Shown: piece by piece, positions 3,611 through 62,435 of the stretch
Numbering within the stretch: the stretch's first letter is position 1
Layout of the letters: each line of letters opens with the position of its first letter
Source of the DNA: Nageia nagi
Taxonomy: Eukaryota; Plantae; Pinophyta
Assembly: GCA_050084985.1 (NCBI GenBank)
Contig: JBITNC010000001.1
Span: 202,554,001 to 202,618,000 of the forward strand
Reading direction: 5' to 3'
DNA length: 64,000 nucleotides
Notes under the pieces: generated by a model
The model's input: only the letters and a program-made list of their open reading frames with translations
Told to the model about the DNA's origin: nothing
Database searches by the model: none
Made by a program: the position numbers and the translations under genes

Positions 3611-4425
3611 TTAGTGGCTCCTATCACTCCTAAAAATCTTATACCTAGAGGAAGTCCTACTCAAACTTGACTTCTTTATCCCAATTTGTTTCTCTAGTAC
3701 TACAATATGTGTTTGAAGGTAAGCTTTCTCATTGGTCAAGTCCTCTATCTTAATGTTGTGTTCCAACACATGATCCATCATGCCTAGGAATTCTCTATCA
3801 TTTGAAGCATCATGCATCTTCCATAAGGTCTCCATAGTCTACTCCAAGAATGTAAACCTAATCTTCAGTCTATCTATTTATCCATCCTTGGTAGCCACCT
3901 CCTCCTTTAGGATTGCCAGTTCCTCCTCAACTTGTTGTCTCACATCCTTCTTCAAGTCTAGGTCCACTTTTATTTGTTCTACAAAATTAAAATAGAAAAT
4001 ACATGTTAGTCATATTATTTTTTGTAAGTACTAACTTATAGGTACATAAGGAAGCACACTTAATTCATTCTCAAGCTATTGTTGGGTATCTATAATGGGA
4101 ATACTAATGGACATATCCCATCCACCTTGCTCCCCCTATTTAGGTGCATCCTCCTTCCATACATCTTATTCCTCCTCATCATCATCCTCACCTTCCTCTT
4201 CCTCTACTTCATTTGCTTCACCTTCAATTTTCTTTGCTAAACACACCAAACTATACAAACCAAGAGGATTTGGTATTTCTTTAGCCCACTATTTCAAGTG
4301 CTCATAATCAAATTAAGGCCCATATGATACCTCAAATCCCCCATCATCTATGTCACTCCCTAAATCCTAGTCTTGGAGAGGGTCCCATTACTATTCCCAC
4401 TTGATAGGAATCTCAAATAAATTAG
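3611..4425 (-). pseudogene. 3' half of the antisense PMD gene of a Tat/Ogre Gypsy element (acidic linker plus coiled-coil exon)
   Basis: The frame continues across the MULE insertion: RVYD (right flank) PNL (overlapping the TSD) FEIPIKW (left flank). Glu-rich stretch at 4170-4225, AG acceptor near 3980, coiled-coil ORF 3611-3835. Confidence 0.6.
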
Positions 4426-4990
4426 GTAAGAGCCTATCCTTTGATCAAATTCACACATACATCATGTGCATGTATCAAAAATAACACTAGTCATATATCA
4501 GTTCCACCACTGCCATCTCTTCTCAATTCCACCATTTCATTTTGATATATTATGGGCATATATTAAAATTGATATTATGGGTGTATATCAAAGTCCACCA
4601 CCTAGCCATCTTTTGACTTCATCGCTATGCTTAGATATATCATGGGCATATATAGAAGCTATATCATGGGTATATAGTGAGAGGAATTGAAAAAATCCAT
4701 CGCTCCAATGATATATATCATGGGCATATAGTGAGAACTTGAAAATTTTTGGAATTTTTGAAAAAGATATATTATGAGTGTATATTGGTTAGGATATCAT
4801 GGTTGTATATCAATAAATAAGAATAGAAAATTTTGAAATTTTTGGATGAGATATTATGGGTGTATAGCAGTTATATTATGGGCATATAGAGAGAACTACA
4901 AAAAATTTAACTACAATTTTAGTTATATTATGGATGTATAGAGAATATATCATGGGAATATAATGTATACATTATGGGCATATAGAAATA
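4426..4990 (+). repeat. Left TIR of the MULE, with many ATATTATGGGCATATA-type subrepeats
   Basis: More than 10 degenerate AT(T/C)ATGGG(C/T)(A/G)TATA motifs, inverted relative to 27010-27572. Confidence 0.85.
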
Positions 4991-7859: not shown

Positions 7860-10440
7860 TTTTGTGAAAAGATTAACATGAAGAGGAATACCATGCACAA
7901 AAGGAAAGACATATTCAATTATTGCAATACCTTTATGCGGGTTGATTGCTTTCAAAAGGGGAGAAGAATCTAATATTGATGCATAAGGCATATTTTTGTG
8001 TGATAAAAATAATAAAAAGGGTCTGAAAGGCAATTACAAATCAAAGGCCATCATACGTGAAATGTAAGAAAATATTTTTTTTCCAATTTCAACATTGCAT
8101 TAACTTGTCTTCAAAAGTAATATGATTCTAAATTTTTTGTTTACTATATAGTTATTAGTGTACTTATTGTTATAAGTATCCACCTCCTCTAAAATGGAAG
8201 AGGAATTTTAGAAAGAAAAAGGTTTTCAATGTCATTTTATTGTTAAGGTATTCAAAATTTTATCTGAAATTGCATTTATTACATACACTAAATTTGAACA
8301 TGTTACACTTGATGGACAACCCTACCATGGAATGCATGATACAAGCAAAATAAAAAATGGAAGGACCAATTCTACTTCACATATGTTGAAAGATACTAGT
8401 TCTTTGATTGAACATTGCTAATAAATGGTGTTTCAGTTAATACAATATGTAATGTGCAATTTATGCATGAGTATTTTAAAAATGTACTTGCAATTTGAGA
8501 TCATTGCATTTTAATAAGGTATGTTAAAAATATATACAATAAATTGAAGAGGGGTAAGGTACATAAGGCTAAAAATGATGTCACTATTATGGAAGGATGG
8601 TACTAGGCCAACAAGGAATATATATATATATATATATATATAAGAACCCTAACCATAAAATTGAAAAAATTGTTATTGGTATTCAAAAAGAATGGATGTT
8701 GGATAAGATGGTGGAATTATCCCATAACAACATAATTTCAATGGATTCAACCTTCAATACTAATTTGTATGGTGTAAGTATTGCTAATTTTTTGCATAGT
8801 TGTTTATTTTTTCATTCTTGATGTTGTCCATAACTAAATTTTTGTACATTGTTGATTTTTCTGCATTGTTAAATTTTTGTGTATTGTAGTACCAATTTTA
8901 CACATTGCTTACATTTAATTCCCAACAAAGTGGTCTACCTATGGCTTGGGTTGTCACATACAAAAATGGTGTTGATGACATAGCTTAGTGACTTGGAATA
9001 TTAAAAAAGCATTTTCTAGAACACTAACCAAATTGGTATGTGAATGTTTTTCTTACTAATGATGTTGCTTCAAAAATCTAGGCCATTGGGTTTATGAATT
9101 TATTTTATTTTTAAAAAAATGCAAAACAAGTTCAAAATAAAATTATTTTGAATTTCAAGAGTGTTCTTTTCTCATGTTCATCTCATATATTTGTTTATGT
9201 TGTTGCATGTATACCTAGGAAAGTCTTTGGTTGCAAGCATTTGTTGTGTGTCTGACATGTGAAATGAGCTTGGTTAAATAAGACCTATAAGGTATCAAGT
9301 AAAGAGATTGGAAGAAAAATATTTGCAAGGTTAGATAAAATAATATCCAAATGCAAGGATGATGCATCTAGGAAAGTAGTTGTATCTAATTTTTATGCTA
9401 ATTTCCATAACAAGAAGGATTTTATAGATTACTTAATTGGTAATTAGTTCAATGCTGATAGAATTTGTAAGTACACTCATAACATGTTTATATTTTTTAC
9501 TTTTTTTTCTCTTATCAAGCATTTGTGATTTTGATTCTACATTTTCAATTGCAGGTATGTAGGCAAAATACTATAGAAATTTTTTCCATTCCAACCAAGA
9601 AATAAATTCAACCATAAAGTCACATCATTGTACTTTGAAAACTAGATTTCTATGTCAAAAGGTAAGAAAATATGGTATAATAATGTATTTATTACTTTAC
9701 ATGCTTTTTTAAATAGTTTTTTTATATTATATAAATTTGGTTAAATTGAAGACACTAGAATTTTGGAACAATTACAAGAAGGAAAAGAATCTAGAGAGTG
9801 TAATACAGAATTCTTGTATGATATGTGATTCTCATTGTGTCCCTCATGAAGATGTCATTAGTTCATACTGGATGAGGAGTTAAACAAATGTGTCAAAATA
9901 ATATCTTGTTACCCTTTAAGGTGAATACTCTTACACATGCACTTGTGAGTGGGCCCTTCAAGGTAACACATACAAGCATGTATTTAAAATCATAAACATG
10001 TCAATTGAAACTATTAATTTTCCTAATTATACAATGACACCTACACCTAATACCCCTTATTCTCCTTACAAGATATCCTCACCTCATGTTAATAGCTCCT
10101 AGGGTTAGGAATATTAGGTTGATCATTCATCTCCCAAGCATGGTTAAAATCATTGTTAGAGAAATATTATGATACTCCCAAAAGTAAGAGTTAGTTTATA
10201 GGTATGGTTATGGATATGCAACCTAGGTACCACCAATTTTCATTCCCATAAGACTCTAATGTAGCTAAAAGGTTCGAAAGAATAATGAAGAGTTGGATGA
10301 GTCCTTCAAGTAAAATCAAAAGTGGATCTCAAGAAATGAAATCATGTGGCTTAATTATTGATGCCCAAAAAACCTTACCTATGTCTTCCCAAGATCAAAA
10401 AATCTTGGTTGACCTAATACAACATAATTTCAAGGTAAAC
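7860..10440 (+). pseudogene. Spliced MULE (MuDRA-like) transposase with SWIM finger, At1g60560-like subfamily
   Basis: KKGFQCHFIVK (~8215), FEHVTLDGQPYHG, SMDSTFNTNLYG (~8736, first catalytic D), GLPMAWVV, FLTNDV, LLCV*HVK*AW (9241; CxxH) and SWIM CTCEWALQGNTYKH (9938-9979). GT-AG introns at ~8774-8889 and ~9467-9554. Confidence 0.85.
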
Positions 10441-11499
10441 ACTATGTGATTTAATTTTATTTTATTCATAGAAATCATTTTTCATAAATTCTAATTTTAA
10501 TTCTACTTTTACTCTTTCTTGCATATGATCATGCTGAATCAGAATCAACATGTAAGTCTTTATTATTGTCAACCATAGCTAATCAATATGATGTAGGGGA
10601 AAATTAGAATCATAATATTGGGCATAGAATTTAAGATCAATGTTAAACTTTATAATAAATACATTAATGTTCATTTTGATTTTCACAACTAGGATTGTAG
10701 TTAAGATTTTTGTACTCTTTTTACTATTTGCATATGTAGACAAATATGATATTATTAGTAAATTAATGGTGAAGGCATACCTTAGCAACCAAATGAGTTA
10801 TTTATATCCTCTATATGGATCTGAGATATTATTACATGTATTTTATTTCATCATAATAGTTGAGTTGTGTATGACCTGAGTTGTGTATGTCCTATGTATG
10901 GATTTGAGTTATTAGCATCATAATATCTAAGTTACTGGTATCATAATATCTATGAGAATTTCTTAAGAAAAATATACCTAAAGAATGAGAGTAGTAAAGA
11001 AAATATTATGAGAAAAATATGCATAAATAATTTTAGGGATGAAAATATTATTAACATAATGAGAAAAGAAAACAAGACATGAAAGAAATGAAATAAATGT
11101 GGAAAGGAGGCACAAAAGCTTGTAATAAACAAGACATAGTTACATGTCTAAATGTCCTACTCATGCATGGTTAAATTAAATACAATAAATGAGAAAAGAA
11201 AAGAAAATCCTTACAATTTCATGGTTAAAATTCCTACTATAAAAGGAAACAAGACATCACATAAATTAAAAAAGGTGCTATAGAAGTCTGTAATAAATCT
11301 TCAACATAAAGTAATTATAGGCAATCATTCATGCAAGTGGATAATCCCTATTAAAAAGAGTCGATAAAGGATATGCAACCCTTTATCTCCCCAACTTGAT
11401 TTATATTGAAAGAGCATAGGAACCAAGATCATTATTTTCTAATGGAAGTATGGGTAATCATGATTTTGACTCGTATACCTACTCAATGTTAGATTGAAA

Positions 11500-11869: not shown

Positions 11870-12260
11870 TATGAAAGCAACAAAACCATTGAAGGGTTCA
11901 TAAAATAGCATGTATGATTTGTATTGCATTATTTCCTAGTTATGAATTCAAAAAAACCATTGAAAGGTTTAGCATGAATGAATTGTGATACATTATTCAT
12001 GGTTATGAATGCAGCATTACCATTGCAAATTCTATATTAAACAATATTGTAATTAAAACATAGAATTTGTACCCAGACTTTTATAGCTCTATTATTCATA
12101 AAATAACATGTATTATTTCTTATTATGAATTTGTTAGAACCATTAAAAGGTTCAACATGAATGACTTATAATGCATTATTGGTTGTTATGAATGACTCGT
12201 AAATAATATTACAATTAAAACATAAAATTTGGGCCCAGATTTCTATAGCTCTATTATTTA
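11870..12260. repeat. Degenerate local tandem duplications
   Basis: AACCATT(G/A)AA.GGTT recurs at ~11884, 11955 and 12138. AATTAAAACATA.AATTTG..CCCAGA.TT.TATAGCTCTATTATT occurs at ~12051 and ~12213. Confidence 0.6.
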
Positions 12261-12669
12261 TAATTGTATAAGAGTTGTAAAAATTAGTTCAATATGATGA
12301 CTATGTACAAAAAGGTGCTTTTACAAATACTCCATCAATATATGTAAATAATATTTGAAAAAATTAATGAAGCAACATTTACCTTATAGAGTCATAAACA
12401 CAATCAATTATATAGTCATACACATAATTATATATTCAATGTCAATTATACATAGTCAAATATACACATCAAATATAAATTATTGTTCTAAATTTTATCA
12501 TCATAAACATAATGATGGCAAAAATATAGAGATTCAAATATACAATGTATGTATTTTAATCATAATTACAATTACAAAGTCTTATCTAGGATTATACATG
12601 GAAAATGGGACGGGAATGAAGCATATTTTTTTGTTGTGTGTGAAGAAGCCACATATGAAATATGAATGA

Positions 12670-13500
12670 GTGGACCTTTTTCATCTCTAGTCTCATTAAC
12701 ATCAAAATAAAATTTATTGAGTTGTGCTTGTAAAACATTATTTATATTTTCCTCCATGATTTTCACTGCTCTCTATTATTCCCATGTAGTGGGATGGTTT
12801 CAAATATAGGCAAGTATTCTTCCTTATATTTTTTTGCCTCCATAAGCATTTTGTTATGTAGAGTCATGTATTAAGTCATTCTGATGGCTTTATATTTAAA
12901 TCTCTTCATTGTGACTAATTCCTTTATGTCTCCATTATCCACTCCAAGGGTTACATGCCATAAAATTTAAAAGTCATAAGTTGCCACATCAAAAGTAAAA
13001 TAAAGTGCATTATACATCAAATCAAAGTAAACAACAACATACAAATTTGCATATTAGAAATATTCAAAATAAACTAAACTAAGCTAAACTACATTAATCA
13101 ATTTTATAGTACAATTTTTATTTACATCAATAAATACTTATTAATTTATGTTGTAACCTATTACACATAGAAAATTTTGAGGTAGTAAAATATCCTATGA
13201 GTATTTTACACGTGATATTTTGAAATATCACCTCTTGAAATGACTTGTTCCCTTTTTTTCCTTATTTGCTAGTGAGGTAAAATTCATAGGTGGCTTTTTC
13301 CCTCTAAGAGAAAGATTGGAATTATACCAAGCATCTCTCTTGCCTTCATTCCTTTTGATAGCAAGAGGATTTATCCTCGTGGTTAGTCTAGATCTATATC
13401 TAAGATCTAGTGCCTTCCTGAATGCTCATTTGTTACCTTTTGGTATGTTTGATTCATTAATTTCTTACATGAGAGAAGGATTAAAACAATGTTGTTAGGT
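12670..13500 (-). pseudogene. Probable further decayed exons downstream of the protease-like domain (unknown domain)
   Basis: Coding-like composition on the minus strand in two blocks (13200-13500 and 12670-12990) separated by an intron-like A/T tract; ORF 12572-12766. Confidence 0.3.
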
Positions 13501-13574
13501 TGAGGTTACTAAATGCCTAAAACAAGATTTAAAAACACATAAAACATTAATGCAAATACCCACCTATTTTTTTC

Positions 13575-14370
13575 ATCCTTCACTTTTATGAGAGTGAAAT
13601 CGATCATCAAATTCCTAGTTAGGTTGATGTTACTTAATTCCCTAGCTTTGAATTCAATGACCCATTCATGCACATATTTTTCTATTAAGAACATAGTGAA
13701 GTAATCTTTGCAATACTCCTTACCCTATTTTAATATAGTGTAGTCTTCATCCTCCCATTTTTTCCTTTTTACCTTCTCCCACACTTTTGTCTATTCATCA
13801 AACTTCATAACATATCATTATCTACAATTCTCATCTAGTTTATGGCTAAGAGTATCAAAAATGTAACATGCATGTTCCTCAACCATCAAAATGAAAAACT
13901 GATTAGCCCATGCAACTATGTAAATTCTAGGAGTTTTTGAAATGGCATTCAACCTTTTGTCAATAGTTTTATCCTCTAGTATTTTGAACTTTGCCATTGC
14001 ACCCTTTGGATTAAGGTAGACCTATTTGGAATTCATAAAGTCAACAATCACAAAATTCAACTTATGCTTAAGAATAGATTCCAAATCAAAATGTCCATTT
14101 AAAAAGTTATCTTTGAAGGATAAAATCTCTTTCAACCTATTTCATTCTTCACATCCATGTATCAGTGCATTGAGTTATTTCTGGTTAAGCAAAATACTAA
14201 GGTATGCATGTAAACAACCCACAAGGAGTACACAACAAATTGAACAAACACCCACCCCTCCACCAACTTTTTAATCTATAAAAGTGAAATATATTTGAGA
14301 TTTTAGAACAAGTTTACCATTCAAGTTTGATAATCAAAAATCCTCCCATGTGGCCATAACAGTGCGACTA
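13575..14370 (-). pseudogene. Cysteine-protease-like domain homologous to the C-terminal domain of plant NT-C2/F26K24.5-like proteins
   Basis: Minus-strand translation: WEDF*LSNLNGKLVLKSQIYFTFID*KVGGGVGVCS..LNALIHGCEE*NRL..GHFDLESIL..IYIVAWANQFFILMVEEHACYIFDTLSHKLDENC..YVMKFD..GKEYCKDYFTMFL..RNLMIDF. Collinear with the remembered family consensus WE..S.DG..L..QVFFASIDQ..GESAC..HFDLETV..YIVSWNDHFF.LKVE..YYIIDTLGERL.EGC..YILKFD..GKE.CKEYIK.FL..RLQIEF. Confidence 0.75.
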
Positions 14371-15289
14371 CATTGACTATCATCTTCCTTTGCATGTAAT
14401 TCTTGATTGTCCTATTCTTATGCATGATAAAGAAAATTATGATTCCCTTAGACTCAAATAAATCTATTGAAAAAATATGTGCAATATTTTATTTATATAA
14501 CAATTCATGGCTACATAAAGCTACCCTTAAACATTATTAAGCATAGATGGACATAGTTTGTGGGGATCATTATAAGCGCCCTTTCTAAAAACTAACTTAG
14601 GAAATTTTAAGATAATTAGATTCATATTAGAGATGACTTTAAATAAAAATTTAAAAAATATGAAGGCAAATTTGAAGTTGGAGAAACAAAACTATAGATT
14701 TGTTTAGCAAATTTTAGAAGTCATTTTTTCATGGTAGCAGATTAAGGACTTATACTAAGTTGGCATAGTGATTGTAGAAGGCTACCACCTAATGGTATTA
14801 GGCCATCATCAGAAGATAGCAAGCAATTAGTAGCATGTTGTTACTTCATAGTAGAAAGATATCATTGCATGCTAGTAGGATGTCATCGCTTCCACCATGT
14901 GTTCACTATTACATCATGGTGTCATGTGTTAATTACCTATATATAAGCAATATATGACTCATTTTCTTCATTCTATCATTTTTTCCACCTATCTAGAGCT
15001 ATCATTTTTCTACAAAATCCTATCTCTAGCCTATAGTAGGATACCATGTGCTTTACTTTTTCATTAAATAAGATTTAGGTGGTAATTTTTTATTATTCTA
15101 ACCTGTCAAAGCTATCATTTTCTTTTTTTTTCCTACAATATTTTACTTTTAGCTACATTTTTTAATCTTTTTACTAGCATGTTTAACTCTCCTATAAAAT
15201 CTCATCTCTCATCATCCACCAACCGTCAATTTTCATATAGGAATTTATCATGTCCTAGTATTTTATCTTTTTTACCCCATATTGTTACT

Positions 15290-18070
15290 CAGAATGGGTG
15301 GACCAGATAAGGTTTAGAGGGCTTATTTTTATGCCTCAATTTGAAATATATTCTAATTTATTGTACTATATTATGTCAACTTATGATAGAAAATAAGCAA
15401 GGTTTTATGCGGTTACAGAATCAAGGAGCTTTTCCTTTGGTATTTCTCCTATAGACATAAGTCAATTGATTAGTTTATGCATCATGTGATGATGTATTCA
15501 AATCTAAAGCTCTCTTATCTCTAGAAGATAAAATATTTTTAGAGGAAACTTAACACATTCAAATTGACTTGATTGGTAAGTTATTTTTAAAATTTTATTT
15601 TAATCAACTTTATCTATTAATGTATAACTAAAAGTTACTTTATTAATTATTTTCATCTTTTTATGTAGAATATCAAAAAAAAGAGGAATAGTGTACAAAA
15701 ATTTCCCAAATGATTACTTCAAAGCAATCTATGAATTTTTTCAATCCAAAATTATTTTGATTTGCAAGGCAAAACATCATATATTCCATTATGGTCTATA
15801 GTTTACATCCTTCATTTGTTGAATGATCAAAAATTTGACTAGTGTTCATATATTTCAGATAGAATTAAACATGATCTTTTCTTTGCCATTAAAAATGATA
15901 TTATTTATATAGCATGTAAAAATTATATTTTGGCTTTTTATTATGAAGTTTTTTATAATATAATAAATATAGCTCTAATTCCAATAGTGTTAGATTCACA
16001 AATGAGTGCATTGACTTTACTAATAGAGGAAGTTTTGGTATTTATAAATAATAATTATTTTAGACTTTAAGTTAATATGTTTATTTAAAATTTTATGAAT
16101 ATTAACCAAATTATATTATTTCAATGTCAGGATAAACAAACATCAAAGAAAAGGGAAGTAGCATTTAGAGGAGTTCATCCTGAAGGCGATGGTGATAACA
16201 AGTCCATAGATACTTTTAGTCTATTAATATTTAGAAGATTCTCTACTAGGAGGATAAGGAATGTATAACCTTGTGTTGTTGGTGAATTTTCAATGAATAC
16301 AACTATTTTTTACTATAATTGACATTTTTTTATTCAATTATTAATATTATTTAAACTTTTGAATAAACTTTTATGGTTGTACAAGAAGGTAATGTTGGTA
16401 CTCCTAGGACAAGCTATCTTGAAAGGACTTCAAATTTTGATGTTGGAAAAGAAGTCCTATGCATTGAAGGTCCAACACAAGGAGGTAAAATTGTTATTTT
16501 TTTATGCCTATGTAATGTAATGGTGTTACTATATAGTAGCATTATGCTACCATGTAGTAGCATCATGCCACCATATGGTAGTATGTTGGCACCTCATGAC
16601 AACATGTAACCTTATAATAATACTATATAACCATGTGTGTTCTATTTAAGTATTTGTAATACTGACTTTAAGTCTATGAATATATGTTTTCAAATTTCCA
16701 TTCAATTCCTATTCCAATTATCATAGTTCCAGATCAAGATATGGTAGATTCACCTAATCAACCAATTCAAACTATATACTCTACACCTTCGTTAGGTAAC
16801 TATTTTTGGATTTATTTAATCTAAACATGTTGTCTCATATAAATGAATTCATATTTTATAATATACAATTTTTTGATACTGGTGGCAAGTCAAGTTCTCA
16901 AAAAAGGAGGTCACCCATGCCTCCACCACCTGTTCCACATCTAGTCTCCATAAGAAGAGTAGGAAAATGACTAAATTTACAATAAGATAATCCTTTCATG
17001 AGACACAAAATATTTAAATTATTAGGAATATCTTCTTTTCTTGATTTTTATTTAGAGGATGTACAAAGTGTTGATATTTCTAGTTTGCAAAATATACCAT
17101 TGGATGTGGATTATTTAGGGACTAATAATGGTTCAAATCCTTTATTAAGGACTCATGATATTATTTAGAGTCAAGTTAATGTTTTTCATCCTCAATAGAT
17201 AATTATTGCACCACCTCCACAAAATATGGAGGACATTGATTATAAAATGAATGATGAACTATCATACTTTCCATTGAATGCACTTGTTTCAAATGATACT
17301 TTGGTACAGGTAAATGACATTGTATTGGATAACATTAATACTTTAAAGAAATAGGAATTAAATGCCAAAGCATTGATAAAAAAATTAATACTCATTATCA
17401 CAATCATTCTCAACATGATTCTTTGTATAAATTGGTTAAGAATGAACATACCAAAATAGAAATTTTAAGGGCTCAAGCACAAGCAGGTTCAATCAATGTA
17501 CAAAGTGGATATGATAATAACATAATGGCTATTATGTGTAACCATTTGGAAAATTTAAATGCAAAGGCTCAAGCTTATTTTGACCTTTGATCAAGAAATA
17601 AGAATTTGGTAAAGATTGCAAAGGCCCAAAAGGAACAAGCTAAGGTAACAAAGTGCGTTCCTAATTCCAATCTTTACATATTTTTTATGTTTTAAAAATC
17701 TTTTCATATTTATGTTCATGAATTTTATAATGTTATTTAATTATATGCGAGGTATGATAAATTGGTAAAAGATGTTAAAATGTTTAAAATTCATTTGAAA
17801 ACTATAAAAAAAGTATTAGTATGACCATTCAAATAAATGATGAAATGGCCCAATTAAACAAAATGAATAATGCTTATATTATGAAAATCAACTTGATCTA
17901 GATATATTATGGAAAGAGAAAACCACTATAGATTTGATTTTGCTTTCATCAAATAATGCACCTACTTCAAAAAGAAATATATTATGCAATCTTGTCGAAG
18001 CAGTTGATCTTATTGGTATTTCATCATATGAGCCAAAGGATTTAAGAGGAAGAGAAGGGGGAGAGGAATA
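15290..18070 (+). pseudogene. Multi-exon accessory gene of the hAT element: PMD/DUF1985-like N-terminus, coiled-coil C-terminus
   Basis: EWVDQIRFRGLIFMPQFEIYSNLLYYIMSTYDRK*ARFY..SFGISPIDISQLISL from 15292. Short GT-AG introns (e.g. 15576-15668). Heptad-like Q/N/K-rich coding at 17320-17900. Confidence 0.5.
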
Positions 18071-18179
18071 TTAATTTGATTTGTTACTATTAAGACATTT
18101 CTACTACTTTTATGATTTTTGTATTTACTATTAATACTAATTTTATGGTTTTTATAGTTACTATTAAGACTACTTTGAT

Positions 18180-18570
18180 GGTTTCTATGATCTTTGAATG
18201 TTATGATTTAATGTTATGTTATGGTTGAAATTTATGTAATGGTTATGTTATGTTTGAAATTTATGTTATGGTTGAGTTTTATGTAATGTTAAGTTATGGT
18301 TGAAATTTATGTAATGGTTATGTTATATTTGAAATTTATGTTATGGTTGAATTTTATGTAATGTTAGTTTATGGTTGAAATTTATGTAATAGTTGAAAGT
18401 TATATTATGTTATGGTTGAATGTTATGTTATGTGTGAAATTGAAATATTATGTTTTATTAAATTTAAATAGATGATATATAAATGTTTGAATGTTATGTT
18501 ATAGTTGAATTTTATGTAATGGTTGAATGCTATGTTATAACTAAATTTTATGTAATGGTTGAAATATTAT
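18180..18570. repeat. Tandem TTATGTTATGGTTGAAATTTATGTAATGG repeats between the convergent hAT genes
   Basis: More than 10 imperfect copies directly visible. Confidence 0.9.
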
Positions 18571-18939
18571 GTTTGTTCAAATTTATATAGTTGATATAAA
18601 AATATTTAATTTAAAAAAATATTTTAATGTTTCATTAAAAAAAATACTTTATACAAAAATAACCTATAACAATTATTTTAGATAAAAAATACAAATATAC
18701 TAATTGAAATTATAATCCACTAATAAAAAGTAACAAATTTGATTAGCAAAGAAAACTCTAAGATCCATAACTATAAGTATTTGAAATTTGAACCCTTCAG
18801 TAATATGTTTTACTCAAGTATTTCAAATTCAAAGTTTTTGGTAACCTATTCTATTTTACCCTTTATTGTTGTTGGTGTGTACATTTCTATTGGAGCATTT
18901 TTTTAATAATTAACTACACCTCTCCTTTCTAAACCAAAA

Positions 18940-19794
18940 AACCAAAGATCCACTACCCTTTCTATAGGAAAAGAATCCAAACCATAAGAGGAAACATATA
19001 ATCTAATACATGTATCCAAGTTTTATCTAATTTATTTAGAAGCTTGAATTTAATAAAATATAAAGCATTGAATACCCTTTCATCTTCAATAGAATCCAAA
19101 ATCATTATTTAACACAATTCATATAATTTGAAATACTCACTAATATTATCTCAAAAAACATAACTTGGATAGAGTTTTAACCAAAGATGTTTAATGGCAC
19201 CATTTTTGTTGGTTTTGATAATAGAGAGTATTACTCAATCATAAAAAGTCCAAAATGGTTGGCTTATTTTGTCAAAAACTCTTTATTTAAAATACCATAA
19301 TTTTTTTTTCCATTTATTTATACAAGTTTACCAAAATATGTTCTAAGAATTACCATATATTTATGAAATAAGTCATGAATTAACTGTTCACCATTACTTA
19401 TATCCTAAAATTTAGGATTCACAATTGCCATTGATTCAAGTAAAGCATCTTGTTGAAATCATTCATGAATGTCATTAGTTAAGGTTGTACAAATATTTCT
19501 CAAGTCAACACATGTTTCATAAATACAATTATCAAAAATAATATGATTTACATGTTCATCTTCATATTCTGCTCTAACCAAATCCCTTTATATATTTTGA
19601 ACATACAATGATGTCAACTTTCCTTTCACCTCTATACAAACATGATCATTGATATTAAATTTTAAAAAAATGTTTGGATCTTTAAGATTTGTTAAAGTTT
19701 TCCATATTTGAAATAAAGGACCTTTAAAACTGTCTACACCTATATAAAGCATATCCAAAGATAAATATACTCATTTTCTCAAAGACATGAAATC

Positions 19795-19833
<39 letters not shown>

Positions 19834-21400
19834 AGCATTTTTCACTAAAGTATTGATTTCCTATAACATTGGAAGAATTCCATATAATGTTAGCAATATT
19901 TGAAAGTCTATCAAATGGAATAGTAAATATTTTGCTTTATCAATCACACTACAATGTTCATACATATAACTAGTTAAAGATGGATATTTAATCAAAACTC
20001 TTTTTGTTGGTTCATACAATGAAATCCATCTTGTATCATTATACTTTAAAATCTTATTTCCATTATTTATTCCAATAGAGAAATTTTTGAACCCTATATC
20101 TTTTTGGGTTTCTTGTGATATATGCATGCAAGTCATGAATAAGCTCTTCTATTTTTGATACACTTATAAAAGTGCTAACAATTCTATATGCAAGGTTCAT
20201 TCTATGCACCATGTAATGAATGGGAATCATATAAGGATCTATTGAAGTCTATAATCTAACACAAAGATCATTCCAATTGCCTTGCATTATTGATGCACTA
20301 TCTACTCCAACACATATCAATTTTGTAGTAATTTCATAATCATCCATTCCAACAAAATCTATTAAGTTAGAAATAACTAACTTGTAAAGATTTTTTGCAT
20401 TGCAATTTTTATCCATTTTATGAACATTTAATATATATGGTGTCCTACAATTATTCTAAAAAGTGTATACATGCATGCAAACCCATGAAGTATTATCCAG
20501 TGTTGTAACTTCATCAAGTGAAAGTGAAATAAATTATGATTCCTGTAATTTTGTCATTGAAATTCTTAACCTCAACCATCAAAAAATATTTTTCCATTTC
20601 CCAAGAACTTATATCTAACCAATATTTTTGTAATATATTATGTAATCCAACTTTTTGATATAAAATTTTAAAATTTATAATAGGTATACCATGTTTAAGA
20701 ATATGAAAGATAGTACAAAATTGAGTAAATTTTGCTAACCTTTTTGCATCACTATTTTTTTCAAACTGTATTTCTAGTGTTCCACATTTCTTTTATAGAT
20801 ATTATTTTTCTTTCATGTACCTCTCATATTCTACCTTATATTGTAAGTGTTGTACTCATCTCTAATTTTATCCCTCCAACACTTAATTGTTTTTCCATTT
20901 TCATATATTTTATTGTAATATCATTTATCACAATATTTTTGTATTGTATTTACTTTTAGTTGCATTCTATGTTCTCTTTTTGTTGCCTAAAAATATATCT
21001 TACATTTGCATTTTGTTGGATCATTTCCATTACTAGGATCAATTAGTTCAATGAATGGATATTTTGCTACCCAATCAACCTGGAAAACTCTTCCAATAGT
21101 CCATTTCACACTTCATTTTCTTTTAAACTTTCAAATATTTTATTATGTAGATCTATCTATAAATTTTTCTATACATTTTTTTGAACTTTTTTTTCATGGA
21201 TGGGTTAGGATTATCATCATATTAAGGTGGTCCATTTATAGGGTACTCAATTGTAAGTGGTTCTACATCAATCGGAACAAAAACATCATCAAGTGGTACA
21301 TGATTATTGGGGTTTTTTATTTTTCATTATTAGATGGTACATCATCATCATCACAAGGTATTTTCAATATATTGAAGATAATACATTTGAAATTTCAAGT
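18940..21400 (-). pseudogene. hAT transposase (ZNF862-like type)
   Basis: RVFQVDWVAKYPFIE (~21090), ISLSLDEVTT (~20520), VGVDSASIMQG..IPIHYMVHRMNLA (20190-20315), KILKYNDTRWISL (~20030) and dimerisation-like DSIEDERVFNAL.FIK (19050-19100). A (TA)n tract lies at 19797-19829. Confidence 0.9.
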
Positions 21401-22435
21401 TTTACATTAAAAATTACAAATAAAAAAAGTACCTATATCAATTGCATATGTTTATTGAGTTCCTTCATTTTTTGATTATCTATTAGCAAAATAATATAAT
21501 ATATCATTTTTTCTTCCCTTTTACTATTGTTCTTAGAGTCCATAGTATCTGTAATTAACATCTGAATAAAAAAATTTAATATTATACCAAATAGATGAAA
21601 ATTATAAAGCTATTGCATAGATACTACCATCATTTGCAAGTAGTCTATTTTTAGGTAGTAGTAGGATGCTAGTGGATGATAATAGGATGCTACTAGATGG
21701 TATTAGGTACTAGTACCTAGTACCACCTAGTAGTGTAGCTACCTCCAAGAAGTAGCAGAATACCATTGGATGGTAGAAGTCTATTATCATACGATAGTAT
21801 CCTGCTACCATTTAAAGGAAGAAAGCCACCATTTGAAGATAGCATGCTACCTTCCAAATGTAGAATAATACCATATTTAAAATATATTATCATATGGAGG
21901 AATATTCCACCATCAAAAGGTAGATACCATCATTCAGGGGTAGATGCAACCTTTCAAAGGCATATGAGACTATTTAAAGGCATCTACTACCATTTATAGG
22001 TAGATGTGAATTACAAATATTACAAAATATAATAAGATTTAGAATAAGATCTCCTTGATTATCACAACTCTTTTTATATCCTATAGGCTTTGTTGATATG
22101 CTTGTTCAAAGGAGATCTAGAAGAAAATAATAATGGATGTATCAAATTTATTATTTAGAGTAAGGTATTTATATGGGGTGATGTAATCAAAATATAAATA
22201 ATAATTTGTAATTTTAAGACAAACTTGACTATTTATTATTTCAAAATAATGGAAATTTAATAAAAATTTAATTTAAAATTTAAATTTGACTTGGTTACTC
22301 GGGCCAAAAAATAATAATAATAAAAAAGTTTGGCAACATGGATATTGTTCTAATCCAAAAAAATTATCAGTTTCCATTTTTTAGAATTTCTAAAATTAGC
22401 TTATTATTGAATATTTGTGGTTAAAATTATCCCTA

Positions 22436-23830
22436 ATAGTTTTATGGTGTGCAAAGATCATAGTATATGCACAACATGGGTTTTCAAAAAGGGCCCTACA
22501 AAAGTATAAGCATAGAGAAGGCATCCAGATTGATTGACAAGATAGATGATGCAAACATATTTTCATGGTGTGCAATGATTAAAGGATATGCACAAAAAGT
22601 ATTTTCATAAATGGGCCTACATACTTGTAGTTAGATGCAATTATTAGGTGTAAAACTTGACTCTACAACTTTTGCCAACATTCTTTAAGCATGTGCCAGC
22701 AAAGGGAGCTCTGGAAAAAGGTATGGGCATCCATAAAAGAGTAGTTTGAAAAAGTTTTGTAGACATAGTTTCTTATTGTGCAATGATCATAAGATATGCA
22801 CAACATGGGTTTTTATAAAATGCCCTAACTAATTGCAATTATTAGTTGTAAAACCTAACTTTGCAACCTTTTCCAACATTCAATAGGCATGTGCCACCAA
22901 AGGGAGCTCTAGAAGAAGGTATGGGCATCCATCAAAGAGTAGTTGTATAGAATACATGATGCAAACATAGTTTCATGGTGTGAAATGATCACAACATATG
23001 CACAACATGGGTTTTCATAAAAGGCCCTACATGTAAGCAAATGTAATGTCAGCTATAAAATCTAACTACAATCTTGCCAATGTTCTTTAGGCATGTGCCA
23101 CCAAAGCAAGCTATGGAAAAAGGTATGGGCATCCATAAAAGAGTACTTGGATAGAATGCATGATGCAAATATAGTTTTATAGTGTGAAATGATCACAAGA
23201 TATGGATAACATGGGTTTTTAGAAAAGGCCTTACAAATTTGCAATTATCAAGTGTAAAACCTAACTCTACAATCTTTGCTAGCATTTAATAGGCATGTTC
23301 TACCAAAGTGACCTCTAGAAGAAGGTATGGGCATCCATTAAAGAGTAGTTTGATAGAATGCATGATGTAGACATAGTTTTGTGGTGTGCAATGATCATAA
23401 GATATGCACAAACTATGTTTTCAAAAAAGGCCCTACATATTTGTTGGCAAATGAAATTGTTAGGTGTAAAAAACTGACTCTACAACCTTGCTATCATTCT
23501 TCAAGCATGTTCCACCAAAGGGACCTATGGAAAAAGGTATGAGAATATATAAAAGAGTACTTTGATATAGAATGCATGATGCAAACATAGTTTCATGGTG
23601 TGAAATGATCATAAGATATGCACAACATGGGTTTTTAAAAACAAGCCCTAAATGCTTGTAGGAAGATGTAATTATCAACTGTAAAACTTGAATTTGGAAC
23701 CTTGTTAGCATTCTTCAAGCATGTTCCACCAAAGGGAGTTATGAAAAAATATATGTGTATCCATCAAGAAGTACTTGTATCATAGGATATGCACACGAGT
23801 TTTTAGAAAGGGCCTATATTAGTGTACATG
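22436..23830 (+). pseudogene. Tandem array (~7 units, ~200-215 bp) of PLS-class PPR motif sequence
   Basis: Each unit translates to NIVSWCAMI.GYAQHGF..KAL..MQL.GVKPNS.TFA.IL.ACA.KGALEEGMGIH. Units start near 22436, 22555, 22765, 22966, 23170, 23372 and 23586. Stops and frameshifts throughout. Confidence 0.85.
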
Positions 23831-23879: not shown

Positions 23880-25930
23880 CAAGAATACCTACACAATGTT
23901 ATTTTTGATATCTTGTGTTACTTGTGTAATGGGATAGGTACACTTTGTAGCATCTACAACATGTAGCATCCCATTAAGTATGGGTATCATGTCACCACTA
24001 AATTTACATGACATCACCTCTATGGAAATGTGCCCCTCTCTGATAGTGCTACTATGGCATGTGCTATTAGGATCATCATTATCCACATTGTCAAACCCCA
24101 TTATATTACCAAGAGGGTCAAGGAGATGTACCTTTTGACCCTTTTTAGTGGTAAATGATCCATCATTTACACATTCCTATACTTGTGGACTAACATTTTC
24201 CTACATAGAAAATGAAGTCAACGGTTAATTTAAAAATATAATTATTATGAAACATAAATATCATTAATTGTATAAACATTTGATATGTATTTAAGAATGA
24301 TTATACATGTTAGCCTATAATGGATTGGTTCCATTTAGGTTACAATAATTTAGTGTCCCATAACACAAATCCTTGAAGAGCTTCTCCCAATGTCATAGCA
24401 TCCCCATTGGATATGGGTAGCTTGTAACCATTGAAATTAATTGTTATCACCTCTATTGAAACATGTTCCTCACCAGTAGTGGTTCCATGGCATGTGTTAG
24501 GATTATCATTATGCACATTACCAAACCCCACTATATTACCTTTAGGGTCAAGGATATGCACCCTTTGACCTTTTTTAACATCAAATTGATCACTATTTTC
24601 ATACCCAACCTAGATGTTAAATAATGATGCTTTAGATACCCTCAACTGAATACAAAAATATAGATTTTAGTTCAAATTAAATTACAAAAAAATGGAGTTA
24701 CCTAATCATTCACCTCATCATCAACATTAACCTCATCATCAACATTCACCCCATCATCAACATTCACCTCATCATCAACATCTCTAGTATTTTCTATAGA
24801 TTGAAAAATCAACAATATTATATATTTGTACAAATATCTAATAATAATAATTTTTAATTTTTTTTTAAAAAAAATTCTTATTGCATTGTTGTTTTATTAC
24901 CATCCCTTGTATGATAAATATAACATGCCCCTTACTAAATTCATGTTTATAATGTTGCAATTTTCTCTTTTTACTCCTATCCTTAGAATTATATTCTTCC
25001 AATTTTGTTTGTATTTCAACAATGGTTGGCTTGAAATTTTTTTCTATATTTGACACCATACTAAAAACAAAGACCGCATGACACTTTATAATGCTTACTA
25101 TTAAATTATCTTTGCATCACCTTATTTACATCTACTATATATTTATTTTGGTTATAAGATGATGGATTTTTAATGCCATCTACTAGCCTCCTACCTCTTG
25201 GCAGAGAAGCAACTGGTGGTGCACCTTCATGATCTTGGCTCCTTTGCTAGTATAACCTCTTCCTATCACCCTTTCAAATAACACTAATCAAACCATAATT
25301 CTCAAGAAGGAAAAAATATTGAATTCCATCATCTTTCTTGGTATTCATCCATTCTCCCACAACATAATCTACAAAGACATCTCTATCATCAGCTATCCGA
25401 TGCAAGCTCCTAAAATCCTCCTCTAAAAGTTCTATAGTGTATTCTTGAAATAAAAAAAAATAGAAGATCAACATATACTTGTACTACCCACACAAAATAA
25501 TAAAAATAAAATGTGTATTATTTGGCACATACCATCATGGGCAGGGACATTTCTACAACACACTTCTAAATTATGAATGCAACTTCCTTACAATTAAAAA
25601 AAATGATACATATTCAAAGTATGAGTTTGAAATAGGGTTTATCAATACATAAAATACTAATTAAAAGTATTTTTTTGTGATATATTATGGTTTTTAATTA
25701 CCTATTAAACATGATTCAAACATGTTTCATGGAATGAAATGATTGGAGGATATGTAATACAAGGCTACATACATCAAGGATACCTTAAACTCTTTCATCT
25801 GATGAAGCACTTGAGTAAACTATCAAATTTATTACCAAGCTAAAATGTATGTTTGTCCTAGGTGCTTTTACATTATATAAGAATGTAGGAATCATGATAT
25901 TTTTGACAACACTCTTTAATTTGGTGGAGA
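23880..25930 (-). pseudogene. Spliced gene with two tandem Tnp1/En-Spm-like (TnpA C-terminal type) domains
   Basis: VHILDPKGNIVGFGNVHNDNPNTCHG..GEEHVSIEV..LPISNGDAMTLGEALQGFVLW (24340-24570), with a paralogous copy at 23889-24145. An acidic 18-bp repeat exon (VDDEVN)x4 at 24705-24785, and upstream exons at 25060-25445 and 25700-25930. Confidence 0.6.
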
Positions 25931-27009: not shown

Positions 27010-27572
27010 ATTCTCACTATACGCCCATGATATTTTCTTTATACATCCATAATATAACTAAAATTATAGTTTAATTTTTTTTAGTTTTTACTATATGCCT
27101 ATAATATATCTCATCCAAAAATTTTAAAAATAATTATTCTTATTTCTCGATATATGCCCACAATATCATAACTAATATATGCCCATAATATATCCATTTT
27201 AAAATTTCAAATCTATACACCCATGATATATTTGATATAAACCTATGATATATCTAGGCTACAAATTCTAAAGTTTTCCTCCTTCTTGCTATATGCCCAT
27301 GATATAGGTTCGATATATGCCCATGATATATCTCGCTAGAATAGTAGAGTTTTCTAGTACCTCTTGCTATACAAACATGATATAACTTCTATATGGGTAG
27401 TAGACTTTGATATACACCCATATTATCATTTTTGATATACACCCATAATATATCAAAGCAAAGCAGTAGAATCGGGTTGAGGTTACGATGGTGGAATTGA
27501 TATACATATAATGTTATTTTTTATATACATCCATGATATATGTATGAATTTTTCTTAATGAGAGGCTCTTCC
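27010..27572 (-). repeat. Right TIR of the MULE
   Basis: Reverse complement of 4426-4990, e.g. GTGGAATTGATATA..TGTTATTTTT.ATA..CATGAT.TATGT.TGAATTT..AGGCTCTTCC. Confidence 0.85.
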
Positions 27573-28210
27573 ATAAATTAGGATCATAGACCCTATACCT
27601 TCCTATCTACACTACAAACTTGCATTTTGGAGGAATGCCTTGCTTCATCTAAATTGCCTCTTTACCATCTCTAGTTTATAGGGCTCAACAAACATCTTCC
27701 TTTTCTATAAGTAGCAAGGAGTTCATTACCAATATAACTCACCTAGCTTATTTGGATACTATGGTAAACCATCAACCTCATCCATCTAAACCTCTTCATC
27801 TTTTCTTTAAAGGCACAATGAAGGTAGGAATCCTTCTTTCCCTTATGGTACTCCTTGTACCTAGTTAATCACTTTGTATTACCTTTGCATTATGCATTAG
27901 TTATACCCTCCTCAAAGTAAATAGGATTCCCTTTTACAAGTACCCATAGAATCCTATGTATATCCTCTAGAATGATGGTGATATCACCAATAGGTAGGTG
28001 AAAGGTGTTGGTCCTTTTTGACCACCTCTCCATCATGGTTGTGAGGAACTCCTTATCAACCCATACATATGGAGAATGAAGTAGGTACCCCATACCAACA
28101 TGTTGCAATACACCAAGCTCATCATCTATAAGCTTCTCCCACCACACCATACACTTCTTCTAGCTCTAAGAAATACACTTGAGCTCCATCAATAATTGAT
28201 GATACTGTAA
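27573..28210 (-). pseudogene. 5' half of the antisense plant mobile domain (PMD) gene
   Basis: FLTTMMERWSKRTNTFHLPIGDITIILEDIHRIL is the PMD hallmark (ERW..T.TFHLP.GE.TITLED). Confidence 0.85.
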
Positions 28211-31139: not shown

Positions 31140-32010
31140 AACTTATGTTTAACCCTAAACCTTAAAATCAAAATACTGTAAGATCCTAAACCCTTAAACC
31201 CTAAGCTCATAAATATTAAAACCCTTAATCCCTTAAACTATAAATTTTAAACCTTAAAAGCATAAACCCTAAAATCATAAAACCCTAAACCCTAAACCTT
31301 AAACTCTTAAAACCATAAACCCTAAAATTATTAAGCCCTTAAACTCTAAACCTTATAACCCTAAACTCTAAATCACTAAGCCCTAAAATTCTAAACCCAC
31401 AACCTTAAAATCATAAAAACCTTAAACCCTAAACTCATAAACCATGAATCCTAAAAACCCTAGGCAAAATCCTAAACCCTAAAAACCATATAACCTAAAC
31501 CCTAAAACCCTATACCCTAACCCCTAAAATTTAAAATCATAAATCCCTAAACCCTTAAAACTTAAACTCTTAAAACCCTAAATATTAAACCCTAAAACCT
31601 TAAACTCTTAAAACCCTAAATATTAAACCCTAAAACATTAAACTCTTAAAACCCTAAACCCTAAAACCTTAAACTCCTAAAATACTAAATCTTAAAACCC
31701 ATAATCTCTTAAACCATAAACTTTATAACCCTAAACTCTAAACCATTAAGCACTAAAATTCTAAACCCTCAACCTTAAAATCATAAAACTCTTAAACCCT
31801 AAACTCATAAACCATGAATCCTAAAAATCTTAGACAAAATCCTAAACCCTAAAAACCATATACTCCAAACCTTAAAACCCTATACCCTAACCCCTAAACC
31901 CTTAAAATCATATACCATAAAACCTAAAACTCTTAAGATATTAAACCTTAAACCTTAAATGTTAAAACCCTAAATCCTAAAATTGTAAAATACTAAATCG
32001 TAAAACCCTA
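31140..32010 (+). repeat. Degenerate interstitial telomere-like (CCCTAAA)n array with a higher-order duplication
   Basis: AAACCCT variants throughout; 31352-31530 is repeated at 31722-31900. Confidence 0.9.
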
Positions 32011-35629: not shown

Positions 35630-36180
35630 ACACCCTAAACTATAAACCCCTAAACCCTAAAACCCTAAAACCTTAAACCTTTAAACTTAATAAATCTAAT
35701 ATAATTTAAATTTTTTCTAACCAAATAAGTTTGACCTAAGTTAAATTTTTAGTGACCAAATTATAACATAAGTCAAATTTTTATTGACCTAAGTCTAATC
35801 TAAGTCATATTTTTACTAATCTAATTAAGTAAAAACTTACTAACCTAAGTCAAAGTTTTCTAACCCAAGTGTAATATAAGTTAATTTTTTACCAACTAAA
35901 GCCTAACCTATGTCAAATATTTACTAACCTAAGTCATATCTTTAATAAACTAATTCATATTTTTATTAGGTTAATTCTAACCCTAAACCTTAAAATCTAA
36001 AAATCGTAAGACCTTAAACCCTTAAACCCTTAAGCTTTTAAACTCTAAACCTTAATCCTTAAAACCCTAAATCCTAAAGTCTTAAAACCCTAAACCCTTA
36101 AACTCCTAAAATCATAAACCTTAAAACCCTTAAGCCCTTAAAATATAAACCCTAAAATTTAAACCCTTCAATCCCAAAAA
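35630..36180 (+). repeat. Second telomere-like block: CCCTAAA, GACCTAAGTCAAATTTTT repeats, CCCTAAA
   Basis: Directly visible; 35946-36040 aligns with 31118-31210. Confidence 0.8.
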
Positions 36181-36182
36181 AA

Positions 36183-60900: not shown

Positions 60901-62435
60901 AATCAATAGAAGGTTGTTTATTGTGTTTTCCTAAGACACATGCATCACAAGGTTCTACGTTCCTAGGAATACTGAGCAATCTCAGTTCACCTTTCTTTTT
61001 CAACAAATGAAAATCATCAAAATTAAGATGCTCAAATCTTGCATGGCACAAGAAACTAGATGAGAGAATACATTTTTCTTAATGAGTGGGATAGGCAAAA
61101 TTTCTTGATCTAGCAAAACTTCCATGCAACTTCAATAACTTTTCATCCTCTCCACCAGTCATCACCACTTTATTGTCAGAAAACATCCTTATCTCCACTT
61201 TGCCATTGAACATATGAATTGAATGATCTTGTTGATAAATGAGCGCAATAGATAATAGGTTCCTTCGCAATTCAAAAAGGTAGAGAACATCATAAAGAAG
61301 CATATTTGGAAGGCCTGATAATTTAAATCTCCCAGTACCAATACCAGGATACCCGAAGGTTTAATACTAAATCTGTCAGCAAAGTACATTGCACCATCAA
61401 TGTTTGTATTCATCTATTCAAAAAAATCTCTACGAAAGGACATGTGACATGTCGCACCAGTATCAATCAACCATGCATCTTCCCAAGATACAAATGAGGA
61501 ATTACACAATGTTTTAACTGTAGTGTTACATTGAACAATAACATAACAAGCGGAATAAGAGTTCTCTTTTCTTGCTCCCATTTTTCATTTTTCATTGATC
61601 TTCTCCCATGGAGTCTAACATGTAATAGCTTCATCCCCTTTTTTGTCACATTTTGTACAATGAAGGTTGTTCCTCTCTTCACGATCACCTTGATTATATC
61701 TTCCCCCATGCCTTCAAAATTCCTCTTGCCACGACCACAATTGTTACTTTTACCATGAGAAAAAATAAGCTACATTCTTCCCTTTTTGAGTAATACACAA
61801 TCTATTTGAAGTAGGATCGTTAGTCTTCTTTCCAAATGCCTTCTCATGTTTTGCAATTTTATCTACCAATGTATCAAATGTGAGAGATTTCAAATTACCA
61901 CAAGCTTGTAGGGATTCAAGATAGTTAGAATATGTGGGGTACGACGCCTTAATCAAGGCTACAAAAGCAATGTTAATCTTCACACCTCTGGAGTTTATGT
62001 CATACATGATTGCTCTAATTTCATAACTTAACGCCATGGGATCATTGTCTTTCAACTCTAGGTTGAAGAGCTTCAATTGTAATTGGATGAGTTCCAATTC
62101 AAAATAGGAGTCATACAAATCTTTCAATTTCTTCAATGCATTCCAAACACAATTAATAGAGCTAATGTGGTGGTTAACCTCTTCATTAACTGAAGTTGCA
62201 ATCAAAGCATAGGCCTTAATATTTTTCATATTTCAAACCGCAAGCTCTTTGGCATCAATCAATTTGGTAAGTTCGATGTCACCATAACAAATTCCAACCT
62301 AGAAATCATTGAAAATTAAGGTATGCTCTGATACCAATGACAAACCGTTCATTAACTCTAAGATCAAAAGTGTTGTATTAGCTTATAAATGAAACTAAAT
62401 ACATTATCAAATGACTTTACACATTCACTTTTCTA
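57946..62435 (-). mobile_element. Decayed Ty1/Copia retrotransposon with a truncated 5' LTR
   Basis: PBS TGGTATCAGAGC (62325-62336), gag, CTKCDKKGD..C knuckle, protease WLIDTGATCHM, CDACVLGK, INT (PQQNDVAKRMNRTL), RT ([14 protein letters not shown]) and RH (KHINTKYH). PPT at 58195-58205. 3' LTR 57946-58194 matches 62338-62435 only. Confidence 0.93.
62325..62336 (-). promoter_or_regulatory. tRNA-iMet primer-binding site
   Basis: GCTCTGATACCA on +, i.e. TGGTATCAGAGC on -. Confidence 0.9.

Follow-up and report, generated by a model that had tools for sequence, protein, structure and literature searches.

Known systems and how the locus compares

Proteases of ubiquitin and ubiquitin-like modifiers are already known from DNA transposons, namely Ulp1 (peptidase C48) in Mutator-like elements (MULEs) and CACTA elements, and OTU and viral-tegument-like deubiquitinases (VTDs) in Helitrons. 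MULE-borne Ulp1 is found as Kaonashi/KIU in VANDAL-type elements and in the MULEs of melon, rice and grapevine, and is conserved, with its function for the element left open (review PMC13317346). For the VTD and OTU proteases of Helitrons and Helentrons, it has been argued that they act on the transposase or on host factors that mark the element (PMC9741609). Here we describe a 64-kb stretch of DNA from Nageia nagi (contig JBITNC010000001.1, positions 202,554,001 to 202,618,000; hereafter the window, with positions counted from its first letter), in which a Mutator-like element with terminal inverted repeats (TIRs) carries the dead remnant of a catalytic domain of the DUC family of deubiquitinases. 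This family is also already known, and what is new is its combination with a transposon.

The DUCs (deubiquitinases with C2) were named in a December 2025 preprint (bioRxiv 10.64898/2025.12.04.692294), where AtDUC1 is At2g25460, AtDUC2 is At3g11760 (F26K24.5) and AtDUC3 is At5g04860, so that the term 'uncharacterised', applied to the family in a preliminary description of this locus made from the sequence alone, no longer holds. In that work DUCs react with a ubiquitin probe (Ub-PA) and cleave K63 chains specifically, triad mutants were made, and activity with K63 preference is reported for AtDUC1-3 and PpDUC (10.64898/2025.12.04.692294). The 2.0-Å crystal structure of AtDUC1 shows a fold like that of papain, with the triad Cys318-His441-Asp456 and the gatekeeper Phe442; the nearest structural kin are the VTDs, followed by YopT/AvrPphB, and DUC and VTD are kept as separate families despite their common fold (10.64898/2025.12.04.692294). 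The C2 domain is typical and not absolute, as some algal members also lack it (10.64898/2025.12.04.692294). DUCs have been recognised as a deubiquitinase class only since late 2025 and are described purely as plasma-membrane host enzymes, with transposons mentioned in the preprint only in relation to VTDs (10.64898/2025.12.04.692294), which are thought to have spread via transposons. Likewise, for MULEs a review of plant gene capture gives Ulp1 only (PMC13317346), and the VTD paper makes no mention of plants (the word 'plant' occurs 0 times; PMC9741609). In the literature that we searched, no transposon-borne DUC is described, and the preliminary description had known of none.

Compared with host DUCs, the remnant in the window is homologous across the whole catalytic domain, of roughly 300 residues (E 1e-41), has the Cys...His-Phe...Asp layout with the same spacing of 15 between the last two catalytic positions, and apparently belongs with the DUC1-type clade, but it lacks the NT-C2 domain and linker, is transposon-borne and multi-copy instead of a single host gene, is very diverged, and in this copy has decayed to a pseudogene in which Gln takes the place of the His. 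It would resemble Ulp1 in being a host-derived cysteine protease for a ubiquitin-like modifier that was transduplicated into a MULE as a second gene and is present in many copies. However, Ulp1 is a C48 SUMO protease whereas the domain here is of the DUC type, a ubiquitin/K63 deubiquitinase, and KIU elements are non-TIR MULEs whereas this element has long TIRs. With the Helitron VTD and OTU proteases it would have in common that a deubiquitinase lies on a DNA transposon, and the DUC fold, as modelled, appears closest to VTD (Z 19.0, 8add). VTD has no detectable sequence similarity to DUC and its active site is Cys-Asp-x-His without an aromatic gatekeeper, whereas here it is Cys...His-Phe...(15 residues)...Asp; furthermore, VTD lies in the RepHel open reading frame (ORF) of rolling-circle elements, while DUC here stands as a gene of its own in a MULE, which is a cut-and-paste element. 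Pack-MULEs are also MULEs with host-derived sequence between their TIRs, as here, where PPR-like fragments are present too, and their cargo is typically a recent, partial fragment that is very similar to its parent gene. Unlike these, the element here has a transposase-like gene at 7860-10446, of weakly supported identity, and its DUC piece is a complete domain that is very diverged from hosts.

The DUC remnant and its enclosing element

We built a hidden Markov model of the C-terminal domain from 15 plant NT-C2/DUC proteins and searched it against the entire window, translated in all six frames with X in place of stops. There was a single match, on the minus strand at 13575-14372 (131 bits, E 1e-41), covering profile positions 5-278 of 295 in one reading frame of 266 codons with zero frameshifts, and with indels relative to the profile that are only one and two residues long. 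This is the ~260-codon minus-strand remnant with stops that the preliminary description had placed at 13575-14370, and its collinearity with the whole C-terminal domain of the F26K24.5/NT-C2 family was likewise borne out. Nine in-frame stops (codons 13, 34, 66, 77, 117, 185, 186, 194 and 216) account for its absence from the ORF list. The family motifs follow one another in order, starting with WE..L.S..GK..L, FF..D(Q>stop), G..C....V, which contains the Cys, and HFDLE, and continuing with IYIV.W..(H>Q)FF.L.VE...CYI.DTL, KFD, GKE.CK.Y and L.I.F.

All of the residues called in the preliminary description, namely the retained Cys, the Gln in place of His and the retained FDT, were read correctly. 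The catalytic Cys codon (TGT, codon 43, at 14244-14246 on the minus strand, as are the codons that follow) aligns with the family motif GESAC, while the catalytic His position at 13899-13901 reads Gln (CAG, one base from the His codon CAT). Directly after it the aromatic gatekeeper Phe is retained at 13896-13898, and in the profile alignment the catalytic Asp codon is retained within YIFDT at 13854-13856, giving a spacing of 15 from the His position, the same as from His441 to Asp456 in AtDUC1. Upstream of the Cys, one of the nine stops (TAA, 14271-14273) stands at the conserved Gln of the FDQ motif. The Cys-His-Asp triad with its aromatic gatekeeper is therefore incomplete in this copy, with Cys, Phe and Asp present, His replaced by Gln and the frame broken nine times. 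The CpG observed/expected ratio of the remnant is 0.10. As the preliminary description had stated, there is no NT-C2 domain, the best match to a profile of NT-C2 plus linker in the whole window having an E of 6. We could assign neither a start codon nor an N-terminal exon to the remnant, Pfam gave no family for its seven stop-free pieces, and tblastn and blastn searches with the remnant found no second DUC copy within the window; a weak match at 60469-60621 (E 0.068) was unsupported by the DUC profile and was rejected as a second copy. The window copy is dead and has decayed by point mutation, with nine stops, the change from His to Gln and the loss of several invariant residues, and what has decayed is a gene copy for the DUC-type catalytic domain alone, without C2.

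When the remnant's longest stop-free piece (67 aa, 13821-14021) was used in an exhaustive phmmer search, 17 proteins matched. Fourteen are plant proteins, mostly named 'C2 NT-type domain-containing' or uncharacterised and in a few cases unnamed, which were matched at their C-terminal domain or a fragment of it (best canonical E 4.6e-5). Two are short fragments of the same lineage as the remnant, P0001 (106 aa, E 1e-19) and P0003 (39 aa), and the last, the repetitive metagenome protein P0002, has no DUC or NT-C2 match and was set aside as spurious. Pfam annotates only the N-terminal NT-C2 of the full-length relatives and has no model for the DUC domain. The remnant itself is unfoldable owing to its stops, and the fold evidence comes from a host-type family member, P0007, for which an AlphaFold2 model (pLDDT 79.8) was searched with Foldseek. 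The best PDB matches were VTD (8adc, 8add and 8adb), the cytomegalovirus M48 USP (2j7q) and AvrPphB (1ukf), and VIA-align gave Z scores of 19.0 (8add), 16.7 (2j7q), 15.0 (8adb) and 10.4 (1ukf). Together with the DUC preprint, these matches agree with the papain fold and possibly tegument-like deubiquitinase of the preliminary description, which had named AlphaFold and Foldseek as a check. Sequence searches of the PDB with the 67-aa piece and with P0007 returned nothing relevant from a PDB copy that does not hold the AtDUC1 structure.

The remnant lies within a Mutator-like element at 4426-27572 (23,147 bp, including a nested hAT-type element). A search for inverted repeats gave a left TIR at 4426-4965 and a right TIR at 27015-27572; these are ~540 bp long and have 68% identity over 594 columns, with blocks of 75-87%, and the element termini GTAAGAGCCTAT and GGAAGAGCCTCT are alike at 10 of 12 positions. 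Immediately outside the termini, at 4417-4425 and 27573-27581, stands a perfect direct repeat of 9 bp, ATAAATTAG, which is a target-site duplication (TSD) of the length typical of Mutator elements. Across the element the CpG observed/expected ratio is 0.06-0.11, as expected of long-methylated transposon DNA. The element that carries the remnant is a TIR-bearing MULE. In a search for repeats close to the remnant, neither a TIR nor a direct repeat that flanks it by itself was seen.

On the plus strand at 7860-10446, convergent to the DUC remnant, is a decayed transposase-like gene, recognised from motifs seen by eye and from a language-model feature search. By eye we noted a FAR1-like DNA-binding pattern (8212-8418), a MULE-core-like stretch with D.TF.TN.YG (8579-8818) and a SWIM-like motif, C.C...(C>Y).H (9920-10099), all on the plus strand, and the Atlas feature search of 8579-8818 led to MULE PF10551/PF21056 and ZSWIM1-3 RNaseH-like clusters with scores of 0.91-0.92. 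Pfam gave no match on the stop-free transposase-like pieces, and the gene is a weakly supported candidate for a MULE transposase remnant. The Ulp1 domain, Peptidase_C48, had no match in the remnant pieces or in the other pieces scanned, which make up part of the element.

At 189 bp upstream of the DUC remnant the element is interrupted by a nested hAT-type element of 7.9 kb (14561-22435), with TGGGGATC...GATCCCTA-like termini and an 8-bp TSD that reads ATAGTTTG on the left (14553-14560) and ATAGTTTT on the right (22436-22443). Beyond it, on the plus strand at 22436-23830, follows a tandem array of ~200-bp units of PLS-type PPR-like coding sequence, reading VSWCAMIIRYAQHG on that strand. This array is captured host-like sequence within the same element; it is antisense to the remnant and adjoins it once the hAT is removed.

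Copies, lineage and competing explanations

We aligned Logan contigs of two public DNA runs (X1 and X2) to 12000-15500 at a likeness of at least 80%, which gave 620 contigs from X1 and 3364 from X2, covering the whole stretch and mostly below 90% identity to the window. The argument for many copies is the number of distinct diverged contigs and not their depth, which does not equal copy number. At position 13899, 10/10 contigs of X1 read A where the window reads C, and 76 contigs of X2 (~96% of the summed depth there) also read A, both of which restore the His codon CAT. Among the 40 best-supported of 985 differences between window and contigs, near-fixed changes turn a Cys of the window into the conserved Trp of the ADW motif, a Leu into a conserved Pro, and the window's first stop, TGA, into TGT. 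In contigs that extend to 14559, the next bases are those found in the window only from 22444 onward, which shows that the hAT is private to the window copy and that, in the family, the PPR array adjoins the DUC segment. The DUC segment belongs integrally to a family of many copies, and the catalytic His is kept in the others. Together with the TIRs and the 9-bp TSD, these contigs support the description of the remnant as transposon-borne and multi-copy, while the Gln reported at the family's His position, correctly read in the window, proved to be private to this copy.

A word-index protein search with an alignment of the transposon lineage found only P0001 and P0003, and metagenome scans with a protein pattern and a degenerate DNA pattern gave no further copies. 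P0001, which retains WAEHFF...IFDT, is 71% identical to the window copy over 59 aa in the phmmer match and 66% over 91 columns of the alignment.

A phylogeny with host genes, proposed with the preliminary description, was run as maximum-likelihood trees of the catalytic domain, on alignments of 16 and of 27 rows. P0001 pairs with the window copy (support 100/99), and the stem of the pair measures 2-4 substitutions per site. The pair falls in a clade (support 93/100 and 85/99) of eudicot proteins of 570-650 aa that includes one annotated 'like AT2G25460', that is, of the DUC1 type. The pair does not group with DUC2/3-type proteins and has no settled position inside the DUC1 clade, and a tree on the 103 columns covered by P0001 alone gave it no resolved placement; the amino-acid composition of the window row is also deviant, and long-branch effects are possible. 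As judged from these trees, the transposon lineage apparently sits within the DUC1-type clade on a very long branch. The earlier assignment to an F26K24.5 type stands as regards homology to the family, but the lineage groups with the DUC1-type (At2g25460-like) proteins and not with DUC2/3. Nesting among DUC1-type genes suggests that the direction was from host to transposon, which argues against the DUCs as a whole descending from a transposon gene.

Identity to host DUCs is 35-48% for P0001, over the P0001 region, and 24-32% for the window copy, while the median among host DUCs over the P0001 region, a lycophyte included, is 55%. Yet P0001 keeps 21/24 host-conserved columns (at least 90% among hosts), and it has the host majority residue at only 23/71 variable columns (Fisher p 3e-6). 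Its three departures are common with the window copy or lie at the same columns, and the window copy has six further private losses at host-conserved columns. A conserved core with a diverged remainder indicates that the lineage diverged under constraint at the protein level, and not by neutral decay from a canonical DUC.

In the explanation that we consider somewhat likelier to be right than wrong, the dead DUC domain of the window is an integral part of the MULE's cargo, was functional for long and was likely an accessory protein of the element. A DUC1-type (At2g25460-like) host gene would have been the source of the domain, taken up by transduplication, and the domain would have persisted for long as functional coding sequence; the triad, the gatekeeper Phe and almost every family-invariant position would have been preserved as the lineage diverged far from host DUCs. 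Lacking the membrane-anchoring C2 domain, the product would be a soluble deubiquitinase, untethered from the plasma membrane, that may remove ubiquitin, probably as K63 chains by analogy with the four tested DUCs, from nuclear or cytosolic targets. Most likely it would serve as the element's accessory protein and deubiquitinate the transposase or host factors that restrain or mark the element or its proteins, a role that would parallel those of Ulp1 in other MULE and CACTA elements and of VTD/OTU in Helitrons. We would put an accessory role and passive transduplication at about equal chances. A more tentative proposal, which we would regard as possible but rather doubtful, is that the TIR-MULE family has, or had until recently, a second gene for an active K63 deubiquitinase of the C2-less DUC type.

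Several observations weigh against this account. The contig counts come from organisms (X1 and X2) that may differ from the species of the window, no intact copy was recovered, P0001 and P0003 being short truncated ORFs, and a search of sequencing runs found no RNA evidence. The transposase identity comes from by-eye motifs and a language-model lead without a profile match, and the PPR-like capture in the same element indicates that the family takes up host fragments passively. Conservation of the core could also predate capture, in a host paralogue, and C2-less paralogues exist in Cannabis (P0006, P0033). The preliminary description had spoken of a long-resident transposon lineage, for which the strong divergence and the conserved core speak, but these data do not separate such a lineage from a C2-less host paralogue that had long diverged before its capture. 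Its further suggestion of an accessory enzyme 'instead of Ulp1' stays at the level of a plausible proposal, given the pseudogene in the window, the lack of an intact copy among those recovered and the captured PPR fragments of the element.

The PPR cargo in the same element, the lack of an intact copy and the lack of RNA evidence favour instead a passive transduplicate, in which a MULE took a final exon, either from a host DUC gene or from a diverged host paralogue without C2, and amplified it without function, so that the His, Trp and Pro of the other copies are merely the state at amplification. This we rate as a substantial possibility, if short of an even one. It fits the captured PPR-like sequence that adjoins the remnant, the absence of an assignable start codon or N-terminal exon, the C2-less or partial DUC duplicates of other plants (Cannabis P0006, Camellia P0016) and a window copy that decays like neutral DNA (nine stops, six private losses at conserved columns, CpG 0.10), and pseudogenisation is the commonest fate of captured sequence (review PMC13317346). 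However, the captured piece is exactly the complete catalytic domain in one frame, and the element appears to be of a transposase-bearing type, albeit with a weakly supported transposase identity, rather than a Pack-MULE. Furthermore, the lineage is farther from every sampled host DUC than hosts are from each other and yet P0001 keeps 21/24 conserved columns, a combination that points to long evolution under protein-level constraint. It is improbable, in our view, that the segment is not cargo of the MULE family but a dispersed repeat, or a piece of a different nested element, which by chance lies between the TIRs of this copy. The interior of the element is indeed a patchwork of nested hAT, tandem arrays and captured sequence, several contigs have loose ends inside 12000-14560 (at 12709, 13699, 13848, 13898 and 14158), and the contig coverage concerns 12000-15500, so that the TIRs and transposase may belong to another set of copies; against this, contigs of other copies span the remnant and both its flanks and pass from 14559 into the PPR array in the pre-hAT state, and no repeat boundary, TSD or TIR lies beside the remnant. 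Least credible of all is a single-copy host pseudogene or a chance similarity, for which nothing speaks beyond the stops, since the match extends over the whole domain at E 1e-41, dozens of distinct diverged contigs were found in each of the two runs, and the remnant is enclosed by TIRs with a 9-bp TSD.

If the TIR-MULE family did have such an active second gene, it would provide the first case of a DUC-class enzyme on a mobile element, and Mutator elements would have their first ubiquitin protease besides Ulp1. VTD in the Helitrons of animals and DUC in the MULEs of plants, both from the same YopT/VTD/DUC fold cluster, would then have been recruited independently, and this would point to ubiquitin removal as something that DNA transposons repeatedly need. 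A many-copy C2-less DUC in MULEs would extend the ubiquitin and ubiquitin-like proteases of transposons to a new enzyme class and would offer a natural experiment in how a DUC behaves when freed from the membrane. For annotation, such copies will be called short 'uncharacterised' proteins or go unnoticed. The importance is limited, as all that has been recovered up to now is pseudogenic.

Related proteins and neighbouring features

A broad search for DUC proteins gave 1503 matches, and none of the best 120 of these had a transposon domain. The 1047-aa Cannabis protein P0032, considered as a possible transposon fusion, proved to be fused instead to an ALG6/ALG8 glycosyltransferase. Annotated short DUC-domain proteins of 254-284 aa without NT-C2 were seen in Cannabis sativa (P0006, P0033 and P0034), and partial DUC duplicates, also without NT-C2, in Camellia sinensis (P0016 and P0067), which shows that further plants with large genomes also have DUC duplicates that lack C2 or are partial.

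On the minus strand, upstream of the PPR array with respect to the remnant, are two paralogous stretches of ~90 aa (23892-24176 and 24343-24609) with the pattern KKGQ.VH.LDP.GNI.GF.NV.ND.PN..CH.... Pfam gave only a sub-threshold Nodulin_C match (E 0.009) on these pieces, an Atlas search of the 'Tnp1-like' piece at 24343-24609 gave no usable match, and the Tnp1/En-Spm-like label is unconfirmed. Their membership in the DUC-domain gene is likewise unconfirmed, and the PPR array that intervenes is on the opposite strand. Outside the element, ~300 bp beyond the right MULE TSD, a fragment of the plant mobile domain (PMD, PF10536, E 1e-12) lies on the minus strand at 27893-28159.

Elsewhere in the window, degenerate arrays of the plant telomere repeat (CCCTAAA and variants) stand at 31150-32000 and 35950-36190, ~4.3 kb apart and in the same orientation. 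The direct repeat pairs 41147-41641/53785-54271 and 42630-43077/50003-50451 look like the long terminal repeat pairs of nested retrotransposons, and an intact ORF of 159 aa on the minus strand at 61750-62229 has a copia-type gag domain (PF14223, E 1.6e-8). At the other end of the window, on the plus strand at 1102-2799, an intact ORF of 565 codons encodes a very acidic, repetitive and Cys-rich protein that matches no Pfam family.

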